A DNA stretch of 63,690 nucleotides, filler included, from Intoshia linei (lineage: Eukaryota; Animalia; Orthonectida), in assembly GCA_001642005.1 (NCBI GenBank). It is 4 parts of 4 records of this genome, joined end to end, with 100 filler letters (N's around TTAATTAATTAA, not from the genome) between each part and the next. Parts side by side here need not be neighbours in the genome. Positions count along the whole stretch, not along the records: positions 21,459 to 53,302 come from LWCA01000336.1; 3 more parts are not named here. The stretch is one strand, 5' to 3'. Positions within the stretch are counted from its first letter, which is position 1. Each line of letters opens with the position of its first letter. The notes beneath the pieces are model-generated. The model searched no databases. It saw only the letters and a list, made by a program, of their open reading frames with translations, and was not told the origin of the DNA. Of this stretch, positions 4,123 through 49,500 are shown piece after piece. The translations under genes were made by a program, and so were the position numbers.

Positions 4123-5368
4123 ATGGAAAAGTGCCCGCTAACTCACAAAACCCAAGAAACTTGTAATTTTAAATGGTTCAAATACATGTAAATTTAGTGA
4201 AGAAGGAATTTGACGATTCAAAAAAACAATTATTTCCTAAAAATTTCAAAATTACTGGAGATATGTTTTTTTATTCAAAAAAAAGCATGAACAATATTCA
4301 TAGTTGTATTTCTGTGAAAAAAAATATCAAAAAAACAAAAAAAGATGTTGACATGAAAAACACTGAGAAATCAACAAAATTGGTACATTTCGTTTTTGTT
4401 TTTCTTTTTTTATTCGATTTTATTTTTATTTTTTTATTCGTTTCTTCTAGAATCGATATTATGATGGTGAACAAGAAAAGATTGTACTTAAAAAACGAAC
4501 TGTTCCCCATCCTACAAAATTGAAAAAATCTCTTGTTCAAGGAGTTGTTTGTATTATTTTGGTTGGAAAGTATAAAGGAACGGTATGTTTTTTATTATTT
4601 ACTTATTATACGCGCATTTTAGAGAGTCGTTTTTCTTAAGCAACTCAAAAAAAGTGGTTTGATTTTGGTTACAGGTATTTTCTATTTTTGAAATTACGTT
4701 ACTTTTTATTTAGGACCCAAGTATTTGAATAGATGTCCTTTGAAACGCATATCGCAGAGTTATGTTATTGCAACAAAAACTGTTTTGGATATTAACGTTG
4801 ACGCTCACCTCAAGGATATTAATGATGACGATTTTTCCGCAAAGCAAAAGTATATTAAAAGGAAAGACAATCCTTTAATGAAAATTAAAAAGGTAGTTCA
4901 TTGTATAATTATTAAAATGCTTATATATTGTTTAAAAATATATAGAATTTATAATTTTATAATTAAATAATTCTAATTTTGAAGAACTTTATAATTCTGA
5001 CCGATTTAGTTAGTGGTTAATATTACAGGGTTTCTCAACCGATAAACCTAAATCTAAATGCACCCTTATATGAATTAGTGAAATTATCCCTATTTTATAA
5101 GAATTGCAGTTGACTAATGTAGGGTTCTAGATAAATTTAAATTGAATGTATGATGAGTATTTTTTTGATTATTTAGCTTTACATTTGTTAAATCATTTAT
5201 TTATAGAAATACAAGGCATCCGAAAAGAAAAAACAAGTTCAAGATAAGGTCGATGCAATTGTTAAAAAAAGTATTTGCGATAGAGAAGATTCTATCTACT
5301 TGAAAAAATATTTATCTAGTAGGTTTGGATTGTTGAAAGGACAGTTTCCTCATTCTATGATATTTTAA
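4123..5368 (+). CDS. RPL6: 60S ribosomal protein L6 (eL6), about 6 exons
   Basis: Spliced GVVCIILVGKYKGT|RVVFLKQLKKSGLILVTG|PKYLNRCPLKRISQSYVIATKT and C-terminal YLSSRFGLLKGQFPHSMIF*; small GT-AG introns. The start codon is tentative. Confidence 0.92.
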
Positions 5369-6478
5369 CTTTTATATTGTTAAATTTCATTAAAAAGTTA
5401 ATTATAAATTGTATTGTCGATTCCTTGCTATTGAAATTTATCCGTTTGCAATATAAAAATGAATGTTTGTGTTACAGTTTGAAAAAAGTAATTGAAAATA
5501 ATGCATATTTCTGGTAAAGTTTTTTCAGAATTTTTTTATCGCAAATTTCATTTTCACACATAGAATTCTTAAATGTCAAAGACCTATTACCTTTTTTTCT
5601 AAAATAACCACTAGAATTTAAAAAAACATAAATTCTAGTATTTATTAAATTCTCGGTCTTAGAAAGTTATATCGTCATAATTAAAACCACACATCACATT
5701 TTTTTTAAAAAATAAGTATTGATAAAATTATGAACATTATCAATAATCTTAAAAACTTACATTTTTACCATCAAAACCTCAAAATTATTGTTTATTTAAA
5801 AAAGTACAAATGTAGTTATTTCCAGTTAACAAAAAATAAAATCTTACAAATTGACGCCTTTAGAATCAAAATAACATTTATTTTTATTTCGAAAATTAAA
5901 ATATTAATGTATTACCATAAAATTTGAAATAATTGCCTACAATTAAAACAAGAAAGATTATTCTGATAAAGTTGATATAAGTACAAAAATATTATTTTTA
6001 TTTAATCTGAAATGAGTCATTTCAAATGACCTGTCCATCGTAGAACAAGTTTGCGAACTGCTACTTTAAATGGTTGATAAAGTGAATAGGAACATGTTTG
6101 TTAATTTTTAAAATTTAAGGAATCTTAGTTTTTAACCGTGGATCAAGAGTTTCAAATTTATGATACTATCCGTATCGGTAAAAACTGATTTTAAGTTATT
6201 TTACATTTTTGAATAGACATTTTTCTAAAAAAAGTTAATATTCAGAGATATTTTTACTTTGTTAGTTAGAAACTTCATAAACTCTGAAATATTGCATAGC
6301 TAACTGATGTATCTTTTTTTAATATAATCTTAAAAACGTTTAGATTATTTGCCAGTGTGTAAACGAAATTAAATTTTCGCTATTATTAATTAACTTTTAT
6401 TTGTAAATTGAATGCAATCAATTTCGAAAAAATCTTAAGATGAAGAAAAGTTTATTATAGTTAATTATCGTAATTTAA

Positions 6479-15776: not shown

Positions 15777-18700
15777 CTAAACACTGAGCTAAAAAATAAT
15801 TAATTTAAAATTATAGAAATTTACAGAAAAGTTGTTAACAGTCTTTATAGTTTTATCAGTAGAATCATTACGGTGTTCACATTTAATAGTCTTTATCAAC
15901 ACGTTTTTACATTCACCTAATTGAACAATACAATGGATAATTAAAAATTACCACTTTTAACTCCATATATAAATTATTATTCTATGCGGCGTTGCATATA
16001 TATGATTACAATCTCATTAAATATTTGCATTTTTAGTGGTGTTTTAAACTTTTTGATGGTGCTATAAATTTTTAGCTGTCAGAAAGTATTATAATAAAAA
16101 ATAATTCGTCAAATTTCCATTGTGTTATAAATATAACTGATAAACCTTATTGATTAAATGTTAAATAAAATGTATAGTAAAGTGGTAGATTTCTAGTGGG
16201 TAAATTAAATCAATAATTAATAAAATAATAAGTTGCATCGCTAATAAAAAGTCTTAAACAAAATATGCAAATTTCATTGCTTGTCCTAATAGTTCTAAAT
16301 TGGTACGTCATTTAATTATTTTAATAACATTTCGCCTTGTTTGTCTACATTTCAAACACTCGAATGAAACGATTTTAATTTAAAATATTTTATATGAATA
16401 CAAAACAAACCTCCCCAAAACTTTACACATGAATCATCAGATGAAGAACACAAAATTGTTCCCATCATATTCCAACTAATTCTGTTGTACTAGAATGCTA
16501 TAATATAAAAATATTTCAAAATTACTGTAACATCGTCATTATTTAGTTTTAAGACAGTAAATTCATTAATGCTCTCGTCATCTTCAACTCTAAATTAAAA
16601 AAAATAATATATATTTGGGCATGTAGGCGCCAATTAACATTGGTTTACTAACCGAGGAATTGCGCTACAACAGAATCAACAAAAAATTACGTTGAAATAC
16701 GTATAACGTACAAACTTTTTGAAGCAACAGCTAAATCTAAGTAACTAGATCCATAATTTGATGCAAATGCTATATCACTGACCAAAGTTTTAATTTCAGG
16801 TATTTCTTTTATTATTTGATATTTTCTAAAATAAAGGTGTCATTGTTTACCTTTAGGGTAGCACATTTCAACCCTTTTATAAGACCGTCAGACAATTCTC
16901 AAATTTACTTAAGTCATCATGTGGGGTATGCCCGTATCGGACTTTTACTGTTATTAATATTAAAGTACATTTAATGTATTTTAAAAATAATTTTTCATAA
17001 ATACAACAATGTAAGTTCAACTCATCGTTTAATATTTTCTTAATAATTTGTGTTAACAGGAAAAAGCTGAATTGCTGTCATTATTTTGAAATGTTAGGAC
17101 TTTATTTTTCCATTTTTTTTAAAAAAAAATCATTTATGATTTTGGACTTAAAAACATAGGTTTTTAAGATATAAATTTATGATATGATTTTCAAATCTAT
17201 CATTTAAATTTAATTCCAAACTAAGTGCATTTCTCGATTATGTAAAAAACGCGTAGCGTGACACTGGATACACTGATATTAGAAACACTGGATTTTCCCT
17301 TACAATGCTAATCAATTGTTAGTGCTAATAAAATTGAATTTTTCTCCATAATAATATTAAATTAAATCCTGAAATATTACATTAATTTTACGGTGTACCC
17401 TGGAGTCCACATGAACCCTTTGACAAGCACTAGAGTAGATGATAAATATTTACTTTGTACTTTCTTTTAGTTGATAAATATATACACCACCAGTAGGATT
17501 AAAGTGATTATTGCTTACAGTTGTACCGACTGCAATTAGAGGTGTGTGCATTCTGTAAAAAAATAATAAAATAATTGATAAATAATTAATTTAGGTCAGT
17601 GGTTCCAACTGATACAACTTTACGACCCACATTTCATAAAAAAATAGCGTGCCCCACAAGTAAACTTAATTAATTTTATTGTACAAAAATTGATTAACAA
17701 TAAATTTAAATAAAACACTTCATATCCCTTCTAAAATTATACACTAAACATAATCATAATCAGTAGTCAATTTCAAATGTCTAACAGTTATTTTTAATTT
17801 TTTTTGGAATCATTTATTTTAAAGCTTTTCGTCAAAAAAGTATAATAATTTTAAAATTAAGTCAATTTTTCGTAGAAAACAGTTTGGCGTAGATACCTGT
17901 ACGTATAAGAGAATTTAAGGTACTAATAATTATATTATAGAGTGGAAATATAGTTTCATTTATTCCATTTAAAAGGTTTTTCTAAAATTATTAGCAACTC
18001 TTAGGAGTCTGCACCTTTTGATAGCCACTACATCAGGTTGTTTCAAAAATCTTTTCAAATCTAAATAATATTCTTATTCCTTTGATGTATTTATCTGAAA
18101 TTTCAGAAGAAGTAATTTTACAATAGTGTTAAATATGACGAATTTAATAAATGTTAAATACGGAGATACAAATTATTTATGGTATTTTTCAAATTTAGAA
18201 ACTTAAGTGACAGTAAGAAAATTTCATAAAGGCTTGATAAGTATGGGTTTCCAAATTGAGTAAAAAAATGAATTATAAACAGTCTGAAACCAGTACCTTG
18301 AATAAAAAATAATATACTGTGAAGCAGACCAAGATATACATGTGCAAGAATTATCACATTTAACTTCATATTTTAATAACCATGAAGTGAGATCGACGGG
18401 ATTTACACATTCATACATTCTAAAAATGCCATCAATTGCACAAGCAACCTAAAACATTAATAAATAAAATTGGTCAAATTAGTTCCACTAAATAACATTT
18501 ATCGGTCTAGTTTTTGACTTTAAAAATAAAATTGTGTATAAATGTAAAAATTAGCAGTAAACGAAAAAGATGACATTGTTGACAAATATAAGTATGCAAG
18601 TTTTTGAAATTTCCTGGACTAGACTTACCCTTTACCCACTAAATCATAATTTTTAATTTTTAACTTTTTGAAAAATATCTTAAACGTTAACCGAAAATAT

Positions 18701-21617: not shown

Positions 21618-24600
21618 ATGGGAAAGGTCGTATCCTACACGGCTTTAGTATATGATTTGATAATTTTGACATGATAAGCTAAACGTATATTTTAGATTGC
21701 ACATGTGCGAAATTATGATGCGGATAAAATTTTAAACATTTTAAAACCATTATTAATCACTTTTGCAATTGTTATATTTAGTACTAAATGTTTCAATTTT
21801 GTAAGGAGCGGTAGAAATAAAATGTAAATACATGTATATACATAATAATGTTTATTATTATTACAGGGTTTATATCCCTTTTCAAGAGGACTCTTCAAGT
21901 GGGATTGTATGGAAGGCAATTGTTAATGTTTTAATAATAATTGCCATTGTGGTAGTAATGACTTTTATTTTTATTTTACTCTACAAGTACAGATTTTATA
22001 AGGTAATATATACTATTTATCAGAATGTCGTTTTTGATTCTTTTTGCATAATAATTAAATGTTTAATTTTGCGCATTAGATAAAATTTTCCAACCTTACC
22101 CTCTTTGATCAAAATATTTGTATATTTATAATTAATTTAAGCTGAAGACAATGATGTGAAAAAAAATTTTTTTGGTCAATTATATCAACACTTTTAGCTG
22201 AATATTTCAGCTTTATTTCCAGGCAACTCTGTACGTGCGTGCGTGAGACTAACAATGTAAATTCACCGTACAATGTACTAAATTTCACCGGAAATTGAAA
22301 ACACGCCTACATTTTTTGCTGAGCTATAAAATATGTCAATATAATGACTTTTATAAACATTGTGAACCGCGTGATTCAAAATTTTGTGGAATTTGGACCG
22401 CGAGTTGATTAAGCTGGTCACCACTGGTCTGTGATTTATGACATAGACTGTTTTGTATTATATTACTTACTTATATTAATGAGTATGTATTAAAAACCTT
22501 ATAAAAATATAAACGAGCATTAATTGGCAAAAGGTGTGTTTTCGTGTTAAAAATACACACATGAGGTAGTTTGTAACACTTAAAAAATTATACATCTTAA
22601 AAAAAATCGTTAAAGAATTAGATTAATTGAGAAAACACTTGCGTATCATTGAAAACCTTGCTGAAAATTTTCACTCATATAGGTAAAAAATTTAGCTTTT
22701 GTTTCAATTATAGGGCTGAGTAACAATTTTTAGTAGAACATGCACCAAAAAATAATTTTTGAATTTCAAAATTAATACAACATTTGATTTGGTTGCCATC
22801 ACTGGTCTATGTTGTCTGGTGAGTTTAAAATGTAAGTACGGATGACAAACGGGAGAGTAAATATGATCTGATTTAAAATCAAAATAGGAAACCAAAGCAA
22901 AATGATTTTTCCAATAATATAAGTGGACAATATACTACTCATATTAGAGCTCTGCTACCGACACAGGTAACCCCGTGCTCCTTGTCATTTCCTATCTGCA
23001 AACGGGTTATGAAATGATAAAATGTTTTTTGAATATGGGCGGGCCGAGTTAAAAATTGAAAAATTATCAATTAACCTATAAAAATTTACATAGATATGAT
23101 GATTTTGCATCTGTCTCAGTGCTTCTCACATGGTGCGCTGCGACGCATTAGTGGACCTGCAGCTGAATCTGATTTTTTTAAAATTTTAACTATTTATTAT
23201 ATGAAATGAAAAAGCACTAAAACAGTAACTTTAAAATATATTTTTCTGTAATTATAATTATCCTCTAAATTTTATTTCAAAATTTCAATTATAAATTATT
23301 GCGTTTGAGGGAACCCTTATTAAAAAAGTTTGCGAAGCACTGATTTTCCGAAATGTTTAATATATTGCTAATTGGAAAAAATTTAGTAATTTGGTTTATT
23401 AATTAAAGTTTACTGTGAGTACTAGAGTTCTGCAACGTGGTTCAAGGACGATCCGAAACATGAATGTTAAAATTTTATCAATAAGAATTATTCTTTCCAA
23501 AATTTAATCCGAGTACAAACATGAACTTTGTATCTTCTTAATTATGCCTTAGAATCTAAGGCTTAGATAATGTGGGAGATTGAGTCAATACTGTTTGATT
23601 AGAAAAATTTTTTAAATGGGAGAGCTAAGAGTTTGTGAACTAAAAATACAACACAAGCGGGTAGGAACTGAAGAATAATGGCACGTGCAGGGCTCAAATT
23701 CACATGATTGTATTTTTATTTATTATAGGTTATCAATGCATGGTTAATTTTGTCTACAGTACCAGTTCTTTTTTTGTTTTCAATGTTATATATTGAGTAA
23801 TTTTATAATTTAAAATAATGATATAAAAGTATCAATTAGAAACGTTTTTTCGTATTTAAACTTGCGGCTAGACTGGTTTACGTTATCTTTTATAGTTTGG
23901 AATTTTGGTGTCGTTGGAACCATCGCAGTTCATTGGTTATCTCCAATTAAAGTTCGTCAATCCTATTTAATATTGATTAGTGCTTTAATTGCCATGTTGC
24001 TCATTCAAAATTTTCCTCGTTGGACTACATGGGTTTTGCTTGGCGGTTTGGCTATATATGGTTTTTTATTGTTGACTTTACACTATTTGAAAAACAAATT
24101 AATTTAATTTTTAATAATAGATTTATTTGCTGTTTTATTGCCGAGTGGGCCTTTAAATATGCTTGTAAAAATCGCGCAAGAAAGAAATGAACCTATATTT
24201 GCATCACTCATTTATACTGGTTTATTTAAAAAATTTTTTAAACTGCATTTATTTATAATTATTTTGAACTAGCTGGAGTAGCTTTTTTGGCAAATGGAAC
24301 AAAAATAGAAGGTTTTTAAATTGAAATTAATTTAAGATTTCTATGACTATACCTCCGTTGATAGGTTTACACTGTTTTGTGGACTATGTTGTGTTTTTTA
24401 ATTCAATTATAGCCCATTTATTTTCATTTTTAATAACATTTTAATTCCTTTAATTAACCCCAAAAACTATCGATCTATATATACATTAGGGTGTCACATT
24501 TTTTCGAAAATTTTAGAATTCGATGGGCAATTAGCACTAAAAGTGTGTATTTTTAAAATAGAAAAACTAATTCGCAATCAAAAACATGTAACGCTATCTA

Positions 24601-27600
24601 TTCAAGTTTCGTTTGTCATTTTAAATATCTCATTAAAAATATTATGGAGAAATTAAAACGGAACTTTATTTTAACGGAAATTAACGTTTGAGCTTTTAAA
24701 CGTGGTACCGACTTTATAATATTGTTCTCGATGTTTAGTTATACTGTTTATTTTTTAAATTTGTTTTTAGCTCAATTTTTTTGGTTTTATTAACGATTTA
24801 ATTTCTCGAATTCTGGCTATTTACATTATTTAAATTGTATTCAAAGCATCCAAAAAAATAACTAATAATAATTAAATAATAGGAAACATAAACGTTAATA
24901 AACTTAATACGATTATATAGATAAAGTTGACAATGCTGATGTACTTACTGATGATGAGAATGGTAGTGAAATTCAATCGAATGTATCGAAACATTCAATT
25001 AATTGTCAAGATGTTGAAACGTCTAGTAATATTAAAAGCGGGGGAAATCGCATATCCAATGGATATAGTGATAGTTTCGTGCAAGATGATCGTACTAATA
25101 TATTAGTAGCTACGTCGGAACATGTTACCAATGATTCTGTAATACAAAATTCACATAATGATTCCGCTGTAAAAAATAAACCCAGAAGAAGAAATAATGC
25201 TATTAAGAAAAATAATTATGGACCTCGACCTGTTAGATTATATGACGATGAAGAAGTTGATGCTCCTCTAGGTATGTTAATCATTCTTATTTATGTAAAG
25301 CAACCATTCTCAACGGGTCCATATCAGTTTTTTGGGTCCATGAAAAATTTAAAAAAATAAAATAAAGAGAAAAATGATATCTCCGCAATTATAGTAATTA
25401 TTTCTAATTAACGCCATATAATTTATTATCTATTTTCCATTAAGACTAAATTTAAGTGATTCCCCAAATTCCCCTTACTTTTTTTTGAAAACAGCTCTAG
25501 AATTTCAAAAAATTTACAGGTGGTACAGTTGTATCCTGTAGTACAGTTGTATCCTGTTAACACACATAAAAAATTTCAATCCGAATAAGTGACGACCTTT
25601 ACATTTATTTATTGAAATTTTTGAGTACTCACATCTGAGTACTTTGCAGCTTAAGGATTTATATACTATCAACAGGGGCACCAGTTGTACTGATATCAGT
25701 GATATCAGCAGAAATATGCTTATCGTAGCCAGCTGGTCGCAAAAATTAAAAATACTATTATAAATTGAAAAACTAGTAATTTTATATCATTTATAGACAT
25801 GTTATGTATATATAGACAAAATATTACTTGTAAATAAAGTTTACAAATAAAAATGAATCAGGCGAATAATAGAGGTTTGATTGGATATGAAATGGAAATG
25901 TTAGATTTTTTAAATTACAATTTGTCCGTAGAGAGTTAATAATGTAAATTAAAGATTAGCTCAAGGTAATTTTAGAAATTCATAGTTTACCGTGTATTGT
26001 AATGGTTTATTCGAGTATGAATGATCAATATCAGTATAGATGAGTAAAAAATATTAATTTTGTGTCAATAATTAACGGAATCAGCACTTTAAAAACATAT
26101 TTCGGATGAATTTTACCAACATTGCAAATCATAGTAATAAATATAATATGATTTTTTTTAGTTTACAATGTTAATAAAATAATTAGTCTCGAAATGAATA
26201 ATGAATCAAAAAAATGAATACTAAAGTGCTTTTTTGACCGTGAAGGCGTCAGATTGACATTTTGTTTGTGTGTGTCAACAGGGTACAACTGTAAAATTTG
26301 TTTTTTTTTAATTCTTGGGCTGTTTTCATTTAAAAAAAGGTAATCTGTGGTTTTGATCATGAAAATGATATTTTTTGAGGTTGCCAATTATGATAATGCG
26401 TATGATTTTAAAAACTATTTCAGAATTTATGTTTTATAAAATTTGAGTACATGTTTCATTTTTTAAACAAATGGTAATTTATAGTTTTGATCATGAAGGG
26501 ATGTAATTTTTGCGTATCTAATCTAATTTTTGTGCGTTTCTGATGCTAAGATTTACGACAATATTAATGCTTTTAAAATGCGTCCCAGAATGTATGTTTT
26601 ATTAAATTTTTGTGTTAATTTTTTTTATAACAAAAGGGAACATTGGGTTTTTACCCTGCAGGACTCAAATTCTGAAACTGAAAAAATTGGTAAAAACACG
26701 TCCCGTCAAAAACTGCATTAGAAATTGGGTTTTTTTAAATAAACTGTAACACAAAGACATTCAATTTTACATAAATTATAGTGGCCTCAAAAAATATGTA
26801 AAATATTGTACTATTAATTTCTGTTTATTTGGTGATAAATGTAAAGCCAAAACTACTTATCGATGATGACGAATAAAAATTTTTGGCTTAAAATTTATTC
26901 CAAATAAACTAAAAGTGATAGTATGTATTTTTCTGGTCACTTTATAAGTGAAGGATTAAATTAAATTTTAATCGGAGTATTATTTATTTAAAATTATCGT
27001 GTGAAACAATATATAGCTCAAAAATATGTTGACGTTTATTAAAAATATTTATATTGCTAATGGCCACCTGGATAATGTTGAAAATATCCTATACCACGCT
27101 GAAGAGAGCACTTAAAAACCCCTAAAAAATATATTTTTAGAAAAATTTACCGTAAAAACATTAAGTGTTTTCCTTTTTAAGGTTTTCGCGCGCATTTCCC
27201 CCTTGTTCTTAAATGGCGCCAATGATTTTATTTTAAACATGGATACGATTAATGTACGAACCACTAAGACATACCAAATTTAGAGTGAAAAAATGGAATA
27301 TTTAACTTTACAGGGCGTTTTTACCATAAAAGGGGTTTTTTAACTGTAAAAAATAATCTAAAATGTAGATTATAAATTTATAATATATGTAACCAAATGA
27401 ATTATAGTATTATGCTAGTTACCGACTATATGTTTAAAAATAAACATCACCTATTATATAGTATTTTAAAGTTATTAATTGAATTCCGCTTAATGTTTTT
27501 TGAGAATTGAGAATTTTTAATAATGCATATTATTTTTCACATATTAAAGCATACTCTCTGCTCATGTGCTAATTTTTTTTTTTTGATTAGCCCTAATATA

Positions 27601-43500: not shown

Positions 43501-46500
43501 ATTTTTAAAATAAAGTCATATTTAAGGTTTTGAAAATGAAGGTCTGCGTTTCTGAGGCTGAGATTTACGACAATTTTAATGATTTTAAAACGCGTCAAAC
43601 AATTTATGTTATATTATTTCAATTTAGGGCTCATTTTATTTTTAAACATTAGGAAAAATTGGGTTTTTGGACTCAAATTCGGAAAATGAAAAATAGGTAT
43701 CAACATCATCTGTATTAGGAATTGGGTTTATTTAAATTCTACTATTGTCATTTTGTTAAATATAAGGTAACACCAAAACGTATACATTCAATTTTATATA
43801 AGTAAAGGATTATATTACTATATCTGTAATGACAATTCCAATTTTCCATACATTATAATTCCAATCAAATCTGTTTGTATGTCTAAATAATATATTTAAT
43901 TATCCAAAAAAATAGTTATATTTTTAATTCATATTTCTGAATCATGTTAGAATTAAAATTAATTTTGCTCATTATATTTTAACCACATCGGGAAAGTTTG
44001 GAAGGAATCTGTTCGTTATTTTTGATGTACTTCATAATTACTTGATGATCTGGTTAATCATTAATGACATTTAAGAACGAAGAGGCTACACTTAGATTTA
44101 TTTATAATATCGTGTGTTCTTAATTTTTATAAGGTGTAACTCTCTGTCATGAATATTTACATTTTCAGTTTTATATATTAATTTTAATTTTCTACTTCAT
44201 TTTCTAAACAAGGGTCATCTCGGTTTTAATCTGTAAAGGTTGCCATATATGATAATGTTAAGATTTTAGGTAATTTGGGGTTTTGAATATGAATATACGA
44301 AAAAGTGTACGGTTCTGAGACTAAAATATATGATAAGATTAATGATTGTAAATCGCGTCCCATAGTTTATGTTTTATTACATTTTATTTTTAAAAAAAAA
44401 AAATAATTGGGTTTGTGATCTTGAAGAACTCAAATTCAAAAAATTAAACATGGATATAGATATCACCCGCACAAAAAAGTATTAGAAATTGTATTTTTTT
44501 AAATTTGAAGACATATAAATTTGAATATCGGTGTGTTACCGTATATTCAAAAAAATTACAAAGTTAAGGATGTCATAACTATTTTGTGTGTTTACAAGAG
44601 TCTTATAGAGGTGACTAGGGATAATGACACTATGTATCGTTTCTAAAATGTTTTTTTGTAGTCATATCTTTAATTTTTGGGTGGTCCAAAGCTGGGTAGG
44701 TTGGAATCTGGTCGTAGGTCTGATTCACATTAAAAATTAATTCAAATTTTAAATCTTAGTAACTAAATTGTACATTAAAATAATTCGTCCAATTATTCAA
44801 TTGGTTGCACTCGTTACTAGTGATTCTAATTTAGTTACTATGACTCTGATATATAAATATATTACATATTACTATGTAGTTATATTGAGGATACTGATTT
44901 CATTACTAGTTATGATATCAATTAGTTACAACTAGAATTAAATAGATATAATAGTTATGAATCATAACTATTATAACTATTTATATATTATTTATATTAT
45001 ATTATATATTATAACTATTTATATACGAGTTAAAAGTTAATTTACGTTATTTTGGTAACAAATACTTTATTTTAGTAGCTCATACTTTATTTTAGTAATA
45101 CGTACTTTATTATAAAAGTGAAAAATAAAATGATGTCAATTTAATTGTCAATCACTTTAATGTCAATTAGTTTTTCAGTATACTCAAGATTGTTGTATTC
45201 GATATCTGTAAAATTTTTTTTCCTGAAAATACCTAAAAATATCCAGATATTATTAATGAACTACTTAATATCACAACACTCACCCTTAAAAAACTTTGTT
45301 TTTATTGTTTTATTGGTACTTTCTAATGCATTGTTAGTTGAAAGATTATGAGGCGATACCCCTTCATACCAATTTGAGAAAATTTTGATATGTTCATTGA
45401 TGAATTTATTCAAAAAAATTAAATATTTATCAAATAACTGATATTTTTTAATAAACAAATTCTTTCTAATAATAATATTCTCCTCATCAAATGCAAGTTG
45501 CAAAAACAATATATCATCTATTAATTCAGATTTATCATCCTTGAGATATTTTGCCTTTAAATCCAAAATATTAAATTTCATTCAACAAAATTAATTTTAA
45601 TTAACAAATATTACTACAAATATAACAATTAATTAAAAATTAATATACAGTAATGAATTGAACAATATCAAAGGAAAATTTTCCGCTTCACTGAACATAA
45701 AATTGAATTCATCAACAATAAGCAATTCAAGTAATAAAGTATGAGCTACTAAAATAAAGTATTTGCTATTAAAATAACGTATATTTACCAGGTAGCCATT
45801 TATATACTATACATATATATTTATATCCTAATTTATATAAAAGGCTACGCAATTTTTGTTTGTCTGTGTGTCTGTTCAGCTTTATTTAAATAACTACCCG
45901 TCTTACAATTTTTTAAATACCAAATTTCAATTACAGTTTTTTTCGGGACGTATATTAAGATATATTTCAACATCACAAACTCACATCTTATGTCAAAACC
46001 CCAATTATCCTTTTTTTAAAAAATCAAACGAGTTCGAGAGTTTAAAAAAATAAATACTCTGATACAGATTTTAAAATCATAAATATTATCATTAATTTAA
46101 ATTTAAAAAAAATAAATCTTCAGGGCCAAAACCACAAATTACTCTTTCTTTTGAAATAAAAATAGCCTTAGAATTTAAAAAAATTTATAAATGGTAGAGT
46201 TGTATCCTGTTAACACACATAAAAAATTTCAATGCGAATAAGTGACGACTTCACGGTCAAAAAAGCATTTTAGTATTGATATAATTTTTTTCCAAAACAT
46301 TTTATTAAAACAAAAAATGTGAAATAATTAACAGTCCGAAAATTTAAAAAAAAAATTATTCTGATAGAGCTTATTCCAGTTAATATAAATACAAAATTTT
46401 CACCCCAGAAATCTGCGCATTCCCGGTGAAAAATAATTTTTAATATATTATCAACCAATATTTTTTAAATATTTTGATTAAAATTAAAAATTGAAAATGT

Positions 46501-49500
46501 AAATATTGATCCTAGAATTTCAAAAAAAAATGTAAATTGTACGTCTACACATTTCCAATAAATACATATGGGTGAAAATATATATAATTCATTGCTTCCA
46601 AATTTTTTTCATTGCTACGCAATTTTTAAATCTCAAATTTTAATTTTTAAAACATTTTAGATCAAAACATCAAAACAATTAAAATTTGGTTTAAGTTAAT
46701 AACGTTACACTTTTTTTAAAATTTAATGCAATTTAATTGTTTATGTATAACCTTAACATGTTACATTTTATTAGACAATAATATATTTTAGTGTCATTTT
46801 CTATTTAAATTATACAAATATGTTTCAACAAATTCAAGATTCTATGTAAGTCTTAAAAATCGTTAATTATTAATTAATTTTTTAAAAATAATAATTTTAT
46901 ATTATTTAGTCAAAAAAAAGGACCATAAAGAGAATAAAGAGTAAGTTTTATTAATTCATTAATTGTTATCTATTTAAATTAATTACATCATGTAAGTAAA
47001 TAAAAATTTCAACGTAAATTTTATATTTTTTTCTTTTTATCAAGTATATTTATAATTAATTTTTGATTAACTGTTTTAAAATTTAAATTTCTTTTTATTT
47101 AGAGTTCGATATCTATCATCATAGTAAGTTTTATATAATCATCATTTATTAATTAATTATTTATTTCAAAATAATAATTTTATATTATTTAGTCAGAATA
47201 AAAATTATCAAAAAAAATATCAAAATAAAGCCCCTACTAGGAGCCCCCACTGGAAACAGTAAATTTTATAAAATCTTTATTTATTAACTATTTCATTAAT
47301 TTAAAATTGAAATTAAAAGTATTTTTAATATTTTTTAACTATTTAATTTTAACATGTCATGAAAAATTTCAACGTAAAGTTTATTACTTTCTCTTTTTAA
47401 CAAATTTATTAATCACTAATTTTTGATTAACTGTTTTAAAATATTAATTTCTTTTTATTTAGACATTTTAAAAGGCCATATTTGTAATTTTTATAATATT
47501 AATTTATAACTATTTTTTTTTAAAATAATATCATAAATTAATTAAACATTTCAATGTAAATTGTATTACTTTTTCTTTTTAACTAATATATTCATCATTA
47601 ATTTTTGATTAACTGTTTTAAAATATTAATTACTTTTTATTTAGATTCAACAAATTTTGAATTCTGTAATTTTTATAAAATCATTATTTATTAACTATTT
47701 AATTTTATAATAATATCATTAAGTAATTAAAAATTTTAACGTAAATTTTACTACTTTTTCTTTTTAACAAATATATTTATCATTAATTTTTGGTTAACTG
47801 TTTTAAAATATTTATTTCTTTTTATTTAGAGATAGAAATCGTCGTTCATATAAAAGTAAGTTTTAATTTACATTTAAAATTTAAAACACTCAACTCCTAT
47901 AATACATTAATTTAGGTTAAAAAAATTTTTATTTTATTTTTATTTTTAAAAATAAATGTTGTTTTTTTTCATATTTTTGTTTTATGTTTTGTTCAAATTT
48001 GACATGCTTTAAATAGTTAATTAAATTAATATCTACATACAAAATATGTATTAATATAAATTGTGTCATATCATCTGGAAAAATATAAATAACAATTATA
48101 TGAAGTTATGATTTACGGTAATACATTTTTGGTAGCCTTACTTTAATGGGTTTGTACAAGTGATTTGAACCATAATAGATTTAATTTTTAATGCTAAAAT
48201 TAGATATTTCCGCCCTCGGCAGAGCTAGATGCTGTATGTACAAAATAAAAACCAGCCAAGCTAGTATTATATATTTATGTACTCATAAGTTATGAGTACA
48301 TTAAACAAAAAAGAGGAAAAATTGATATAGTTTATGTAACTAGAAATATATAAATATGTATACTATAATACACTAATACAAATATACTAATACATTCAGA
48401 AATATGATAATTAAATAATATGTGTTTTATCCACTTTGTTTAATTGTATAATATCAATTATCTCTTTTTGTTATTTCTATAAACGCTACTTTATCCCCAT
48501 ACTCTATGTCTTATTTTAGAAATTAGTTACATAACTTTGATTTAGTAAATATAGCTCATAACTTTAATTACCATTAATTCTAAATATATCCACACAATGT
48601 ATAACATACATTGGAAACACTACTTGTTATCCAATCTTAAATAAATTTACATTTTTTCTGATTCATAATCACTGGTAATTCCTAAAATCTTTTTTAACTT
48701 CGATATGTCCATAGTATGTAAATATTGTTCATAAATCTATAATTATAGCTATAATATAATTATATATATATTATTTATATATATTATATACAATAATGTA
48801 TACTAGGGGTGTTAATTTTAGTACTTTTTTTGGAAATTTTATAGTCCAAAAGCGGATAAACTCGCGTATGACAATTTGTACGGCTACTCTGAAAAAAAAT
48901 GATTTTAGAGAATTTTTAGCAGAGACGCTTGCCATTTCAAAAAGACATACAAAAATGTTATAAAAAGTTAAATATATAACTTTATTTACTAGAATGCTAT
49001 GATAATATATTGTAGTTGTGGTTTGAGTGGTCTTGTGTTAAATTCAACTCTCCGTTATTTATGTTTTTAGTGAAAATTTTTATCCATAAAAAATAACAAT
49101 TTTTATAAAATTAATAGGTTGACTGTTATGTACTACGTATAAACAGCACCTAGCTCTGCCGAGGGCACATTTATATTCCATCAAAAAAATAAATTCAGGT
49201 GAAAATCTAACTTAAAAATCCTATTATTCACTATTATCAATCCTCTAAAGAAGTGGTTCCTAAACTTGTTTCAGGTGCAACCGTTATATCACATTACTTT
49301 TTCCATTAAAGTGAATTATTCCATCTTAATTTTGTATTTATATCAACTGGAATAAGCTGTATCAGAATAATTTTTTAATTAATAAATGAATTAATAATTT
49401 TTTTTAATTTAAATTTATGATAATATTTATGATTTTAAAATTTGTATCAGAGTGTATATTTTTTTAGATTCTAGAATTCGTTTGATTTTCAAAAAAAAAG

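Follow-up and report, generated by a model that had tools for sequence, protein, structure and literature searches.

A low-copy array of micro-exon-like segments and near-identical intron-like units carried by a non-autonomous Helitron in Intoshia linei

How can the introns of what looks like one gene be nearly identical to each other when the exons between them share nothing? A clean and small case of this puzzle is presented by an array on the plus strand at positions 46792–47855 of the DNA analyzed here, a stretch of 63,690 nucleotides from the orthonectid Intoshia linei (assembly GCA_001642005.1), made of four parts joined with filler and hereafter called the window. The part holding the array comes from LWCA01000336.1 and is contig C2387 in the assembly that we searched, which comprises 3520 contigs with a total of 41.6 Mb and is possibly incomplete. 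An earlier note on this DNA had suggested that the array could be an independently evolved micro-exon gene (MEG)-like locus, built by tandem duplication. We found that the array is not a free-standing locus but cargo of low copy number, truncated within introns and carried by a single copy of a non-autonomous Helitron, and we put at roughly 50% the probability that this cargo derives from the interior of a micro-exon gene, captured by the Helitron and now residing in an intron of the ryanodine receptor (RyR) gene.

The array consists of seven variable segments (E1–E7) with six intron-like units (I1–I6) between them, all on the plus strand. It starts with E1 (46792–46845; 54 nt, a multiple of three), followed by I1 (46846–46909; a short-type unit of 64 nt with 9% GC), E2 (46910–46940; 31 nt, with a run of eight A), I2 (46941–47102; long-type, 162 nt), E3 (47103–47123; 21 nt), I3 (47124–47192; short-type, 69 nt), E4 (47193–47258; 66 nt), I4 (47259–47462; long-type, 204 nt, with an extra internal duplication), E5 (47463–47483; 21 nt), I5 (47484–47644; long-type, 161 nt), E6 (47645–47665; 21 nt), I6 (47666–47829; long-type, 164 nt) and finally E7 (47830–47855; 26 nt). 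Every unit begins with GTAA(G/A/T)T and ends with TTTAG, and a branch-point-like TTAAC is found about 32 nt upstream of each 3′ edge; the coordinates, lengths and edges given in the earlier note could all be reproduced from the sequence. Tandem Repeats Finder reported region 47362–47830 as a repeat with a period of 185 nt (2.6 copies, 85% matches), and a repeat search returned a 148-nt block in four in-register copies of 71–88% identity, with I6 being 88% identical to I5 over these 148 nt. Each of the two short units corresponds to a long unit that has lost an internal portion, with the 3′ ends belonging to repeat family D2 and the 5′ ends to D3, and since they share their ends with the long units, the six introns constitute one family.

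The degree of conservation differed sharply between the units and the segments. Over the last 50 nt before the segments, the units preceding E3, E5, E6 and E7, together with one unit from another contig, were 90–96% identical in pairwise comparisons, and the first 30 nt after the segments were 62–93% identical, whereas the segments themselves reached 34–58%, which is the level of unrelated AT-rich strings under free alignment. This contrast is far beyond chance and cannot be given by uniform neutral divergence. The previous observation that the segments differ from one another was hence borne out for most of them, but not all are unrelated, because the 3′ part of E1 is like E6 at 16 of 21 positions (by eye), E3 and E7 agree at 14 of 21 positions in an ungapped hand count or 15 of 26 in a gapped alignment, and E2 and E4 start with a common sequence.

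The element that carries the array is a non-autonomous Helitron copy of 2439 nt on the plus strand (45826–48264), starting with TC after a host A and ending with CTAG (48261–48264) before a host T. Its left arm (45826–46674) is a high-copy backbone, with the alignments to other copies ending at 46656–46674. On the other side of the cargo, region 47876–48264 consists of a sub-family backbone (47876 to ~48000) and then the right arm, which is of high copy number and includes the 3′ end; sequence 47876–48275 aligned to contigs C2935 and C201 and, from 48047–48070 onwards, to more than 25 copies. When 45100–49300 was aligned against about 40 fetched loci, the left arm (45826 to ~46674) and the right arm (~48000–48264) were each covered by 20–29 copies and the middle was almost uncovered. 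At many loci the two arms were colinear, in the same orientation and 90–750 nt apart, as compared with the cargo of ~1.2 kb in the window copy. A query with part of the left arm (46370–46600) gave 2488 first-look candidates in the assembly, with 91–94% identity among the 40 that were scored.

The termini of the family agreed with this assignment. Hallmarks of Helitrons are a 5′ TC, a 3′ CTRR with a short palindrome some 10–12 nt from this end, and insertion between a host A and T that leaves no target-site duplication, with the hairpin located 11 nt from the end in Helraiser (PMC4778049). Among the family copies studied here, 13 of 15 started with TC and 12 of 15 had a host A before it, 25 of 28 ended with CTAG or CTAA, and in 23 of these 28 copies CTAG stood directly before a T of the host; the flanks varied between copies, with no target-site duplication. 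The family consensus contains a hairpin with a 9-bp stem and a 3-nt loop, 11 nt upstream of CTAG, and a remnant of this hairpin lies at the same distance from the CTAG end of the window copy (48233–48253, plus strand, coordinates counted by hand). The remnant is mutated, and the copy is therefore old. The longest open reading frame (ORF) within 45826–48264 is 65 aa, and since no large ORF is present the element is non-autonomous.

The cargo could be delimited at both ends. It opens with I0 (46675–46791, plus strand, 117 nt), a stretch unique in the genome that represents the degenerate 3′ portion of an intron of the long type: I0 can be aligned to I2, I5 and I6, and its terminal TTTTAG immediately precedes E1. 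The cargo therefore begins inside an intron. It closes with an intron stub of ~20 nt after E7 (47856–47875, plus strand), starting with GTAAGT. Neither a first nor a last exon is present in the cargo, and it encodes no signal peptide and has no Met in its open frame. The earlier note had likewise seen no start exon or signal peptide and had allowed for a fragment or pseudogene; a cargo cut within introns at both ends would most likely be a gene fragment.

Searches of the whole assembly showed that the intron units of the array, and the three exon sequences used as queries, are confined to three loci, namely the window array and two further fragments located on contigs C2316 (region 4600–5100) and C2040 (region 17460–17827), both of which begin inside introns and lie in mosaics of transposon or viral-fossil sequence. 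On C2316, the fragment starts with the terminal 50 nt of a long unit, which abut an inverted piece of the Helitron left arm, itself split by another insertion. There follow three further segments (27, 24 and 18 nt), each bounded by GT/AG, and then the sub-family backbone and the right arm; the intron start after the 27-nt segment is the same as that after E4. The C2040 fragment starts within a short unit; it has a single 39-nt segment, which is akin to E2, and a long unit of reduced length, and it leads directly into an ORF. A 22-nt core of the long unit was found six times in the assembly at no more than one mismatch (four times in the window and once each on C2040 and C2316), and at two to three mismatches the count equaled that of the control. 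None of about 35 other fetched copies of the Helitron family has the unit, and the conserved 3′ block gave no match among public metagenome contigs.

This distribution bears on the idea that a small mobile or self-propagating intron, introner-like or spread by reverse splicing, invaded an older coding sequence. Introners yield a pattern of this kind throughout genomes, with near-identical introns between unrelated exon flanks (PMC9860276), and the long units, apart from the duplication in I4, are indeed uniform (161–164 nt), carry their splice signals at the very ends and are near-identical between unrelated exons. Introners occur, however, as hundreds of copies across unrelated genes, whereas the unit found here occurs some 6–10 times at three related loci, with the six close copies all at these loci and none in other genes. 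Reading the unit edges by eye, we found neither target-site duplications nor terminal repeats; the regular 21-nt spacing and the bias towards multiples of three (see below) would not be expected from insertion, and the related exon pairs E1/E6 and E3/E7 indicate duplication of units. Invasion by an introner-like intron hence seems very unlikely.

Do the segments look like exons? Each of the 11 segments at these loci is bounded by GT/AG edges that conform to an extended consensus, and the introns of the RyR host gene use GTAATT and GTAAAT, splice-site forms that match those of the array. The segment length is a multiple of three in 9 of 11 cases (binomial P = 0.0014), or in 7 of 9 (P ~0.008, by hand) if the three 21-mers are counted once. 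All four segments outside the window array (27, 24, 18 and 39 nt) are multiples of three (P = 0.012), and their edges are unambiguous, leaving no choice of boundary; spacers lacking GT/AG edges or the length bias in other copies had been named in the earlier note as the sign of a plain degenerate minisatellite, and these four have both. Eight of the nine multiple-of-three segments are open in one phase, in which two bases finish a codon and one is left (P = 0.045 against shuffles). When the seven window segments were joined, frame 0 was open for 71 codons (within-exon shuffles, P = 0.017; local random segments, P = 0.018), with the reverse strand reaching 34 codons, and this reproduced the uninterrupted frame reported earlier, including its stop, which is a TAG formed at the junction of E6 and E7. 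The GC contents were 19–33% for the window segments and 42–50% for those of C2316 (hand count), as compared with 9–13% for the intron-like units. The proposed micro-exon character of the segments was thereby supported with regard to edges, length bias, common phase and higher GC content, with E2 and E7 as asymmetric members. Taken together, the evidence that these segments are or were coding micro-exons appears good but not conclusive.

Regarding E2, its counterpart on C2040 (39 nt; locus L079, 5514–5552) has the codons AGG ACC in common with it in the same open frame. One base is left before the intron in each, and the phases of entry differ. The 31-nt length of E2 may be due to a later one-base change in its run of A, or to a real asymmetry.

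The older units (those before E1 and around the second and third C2316 segments) are ~60% identical to the rest, a divergence comparable to that seen between related exons. The term hypervariable exons, as used in the earlier note, describes the random-level identity of the segments correctly but is therefore one reading only, since the anomaly may instead lie in a subset of introns (I2, I4, I5 and I6 with their relatives on other contigs) that was recently homogenized or duplicated, not necessarily in hypermutation of exons.

The reading that we favor, that of a Helitron-captured fragment of a micro-exon gene, would have the following course. Its source would be a real spliced gene with small, mostly symmetric coding exons, and with short and very AT-rich introns all descended from one intron. 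The contrast between introns and exons would have arisen in that gene, either because gene conversion or unequal crossing-over homogenized its paralogous introns with selection keeping the exons distinct, or because exon–intron units were tandemly duplicated and the exons then diversified under diversifying selection. Both of these mechanisms would require a period when the exons mattered, which would point to a genic origin. A non-autonomous Helitron would then have captured a fragment of this gene as DNA. The element now carrying this cargo lies in the RyR intron, where the window copy of the fragment would be decaying and is probably non-coding.

Several points weigh against such a genic origin. 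Firstly, the search of the genome that had been suggested for other arrays and a parent gene gave the two further fragments but no parent and no signal-peptide exon, as a source gene did not turn up in the assembly with the long and short units, the unique flanks, the C2316 introns, the 22-nt core or three of the exons as queries. Secondly, the exon statistics come from 11 short segments, some of which share descent, so that the numbers are small; the lengths of E2 (31 nt) and E7 (26 nt) cannot be divided by three, and the 71-codon frame, being rich in Lys and Ile and devoid of Met, is modestly improbable and closed by the TAG at its last junction. The evidence for exons is, moreover, DNA sequence throughout. 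Finally, central arrays are known from non-autonomous Helitron-type elements, so that part of the anatomy needs no gene.

This last point leads to the alternative that the array never was part of a gene and represents a central tandem repeat of the Helitron, with satellite-like monomers of ~185 nt that arose within the element, and with edges and a length bias produced by AT-richness and chance. It is indeed centrally placed in a non-autonomous element, has a period of 182–185 nt and comprises 2.6–4 monomers, and central arrays of 140–180-nt repeats are typical of non-autonomous Helentrons (PMC7492417). The central repeats of HINE/DINE-1-type elements, such as Cg_HINE, likewise consist of a few nucleosome-length monomers amid a non-autonomous rolling-circle element, but they are found family-wide and are similar over the whole monomer (PMC7492417), whereas the array studied here is found at three loci and each of its monomers contains a dissimilar segment of 21–27 nt. 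Within the present family, other internal tandem repeats do occur (the C2466 copy), and a repeat of this type would also accord with an array that has no start codon and no parent gene in the assembly. With three loci set against the 2488 first-look candidates for the left arm, however, the array is not a feature of the family. Random-level segments beside flanks that are 90–96% identical are furthermore not a product of monomer drift, extended GT/AG consensus was seen at every one of the 11 segments, and the multiple-of-three bias held out of sample. We consequently consider a non-genic repeat doubtful, albeit a possibility to be kept in mind.

It was also considered whether the window locus could be a working micro-exon gene or part of one, with a promoter within the Helitron or close to it driving transcription on the plus strand, and with splicing and exon skipping giving variable small proteins. 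The strong and uniform splice consensus with its branch-point-like TTAAC, and the symmetric segments with one phase and a 71-codon open frame, would agree with this, as would the knowledge that Helitron-captured fragments can be expressed, with a small share being under selection (PMC4778049). On the other hand, the locus lacks a Met, a signal peptide and both terminal exons, its cargo starts and stops within introns, its frame stops at the E6/E7 junction, the mutated 3′ hairpin signifies an old copy and both of the remaining copies are broken pieces. We thus judge it unlikely that this locus is a working MEG-like gene. A wider proposal, which we would call improbable, is that the array or an unassembled source represents an expressed micro-exon gene family, in which the symmetric phase-1 exons would be kept different as the introns evolve in concert, and with Helitrons copying and reshuffling the cassettes, for instance onto the viral-fossil ORF of C2040; the host of such a family need not be a flatworm. 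If true, it would constitute a second and independent origin of MEG-like diversification, coupled to a rolling-circle transposon.

Returning to capture of a micro-exon gene fragment, one of the closest known systems is that of schistosome MEGs, which have many very short exons of 6–81 bp, mostly multiples of three with a few that are not, and introns of 0.1–5 kb (PMC10526429). The array shares with them the short and mostly symmetric exons (here 18–66 nt), some asymmetric ones, signs of unit duplication and transposon sequence at the borders (PMC10526429), with the likeness being one of architecture and exon lengths. It differs in having no signal-peptide or terminal exon, in its introns of 64–204 nt and in being transposon cargo.

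We know of no description of a run of tiny exons with homologous introns as Helitron cargo. Gene capture by Helitrons is as such well in line with the present findings, since the maize Helitrons and the bat Helibat (PMC4778049) similarly display arms with TC and hairpin-CTAG termini, a low-copy gene-like insert of exons and introns, sister copies with different cargo, and fragments without the ends of the gene. The differences are that no parent locus is found in the assembly here, and that the cargo is made of 18–66-nt exons with homologous introns.

If the exon reading is true, the cargo would record a micro-exon gene that is otherwise absent from the assembly, and it would follow that series of tiny symmetric exons can be acquired and dispersed by Helitrons, as ready material for exon shuffling. 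If it is wrong, AT-rich arrays borne by transposons can mimic micro-exon genes and thereby mislead gene finders.

Explanations at the RNA level were also assessed. A long unit together with its exon folded no better than shuffled sequences (z = −0.84), which makes a structured RNA unlikely, and no known RNA family was found in Rfam at E up to 1 in 45800–48300. Two small-RNA models, one with a 21-nt product preceded by a promoter-like core and one with variable guides on a scaffold like that of small nucleolar RNAs, were dropped in view of the 18–66-nt segments, the mere ten or so units and the lack of a family match. With regard to a docking site of the Dscam type, no complementary site was found, since the reverse complement of the core had no matches in the window beyond the four units, and inverted repeats that could serve selector pairing were at the AT-rich background level.

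The Helitron family behaves as a collector of assorted fragments. The C2040 ORF belongs to a small family of viral fossils resembling rhabdovirus nucleocapsids, and the C201 Helitron, which is of the same sub-family as the window copy, carries a piece of such a fossil; thus both the C201 copy and the array fragment of C2040, which is fused to one, hold fossil pieces. The flank on C2040 was also considered as a high-copy Helitron end, but this was rejected, as it is not one. The rhabdovirus-like fossils were seen in locus L079 (C2040) at 5686–5828, in L013 (C201) at 2296–2565 on the minus strand, in L089 (C439) at 1414–1926 on the minus strand, and in L093 (C2088) at 360–1797 and 2566–2967 on the minus strand. 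Their nucleocapsid-like frames gave Pfam Rhabdo_ncap E-values of 1.7e-5 to 0.11, none of which reached the curated cut-off, and C2088 also has a clear piece of Mononegavirales polymerase (E = 4e-23). Beside the nucleocapsid-like fossil of L089, frames on the minus strand at 701–1321 resemble the reverse transcriptase/RNase H of long terminal repeat (LTR) retrotransposons, as judged by eye only. On C2316, a decayed remnant resembling a mariner-type transposase (locus L006, 2440–3049), likewise judged by eye, lies between the backbone and the right arm, and the insertion that splits the inverted Helitron arm further upstream (L006, ~790–1370) is ~580 nt long; its ends are inverted and its target, TTCTAG(G/A)A, is duplicated. 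Locus L079 of C2040 furthermore contains, at 1434–1859 on the plus strand, an ORF with a cystine-knot domain of the TGF-beta family (Pfam E = 1.7e-16), which confirms that this is an animal genome.

As for the surroundings of the array, the host gene on the minus strand is a ryanodine receptor, with an exon at 41.9 kb matching residues 4730–4761 of RyR2. The exons flanking the host intron were read from the sequence at 43800–43869 and 48649–48715, and these appear to be receptor sequence resembling RyR1. Among 1.8 billion representative proteins, a RyR exon had no match from the same species, and a look-up of an ORF gave no record. This agrees with the earlier statement that the array lies antisense within a RyR intron. 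A second 3′ end of the Helitron family, on the minus strand at ~49120–49180, has its hairpin some 900 nt downstream of the window copy, in the next intron of the RyR gene. Further away in the window, a presenilin gene extends over 21832–25360 on the plus strand, with introns of ~1–1.7 kb and an exon at 23862–24104 matching the Pfam family Presenilin (E = 6.5e-23).

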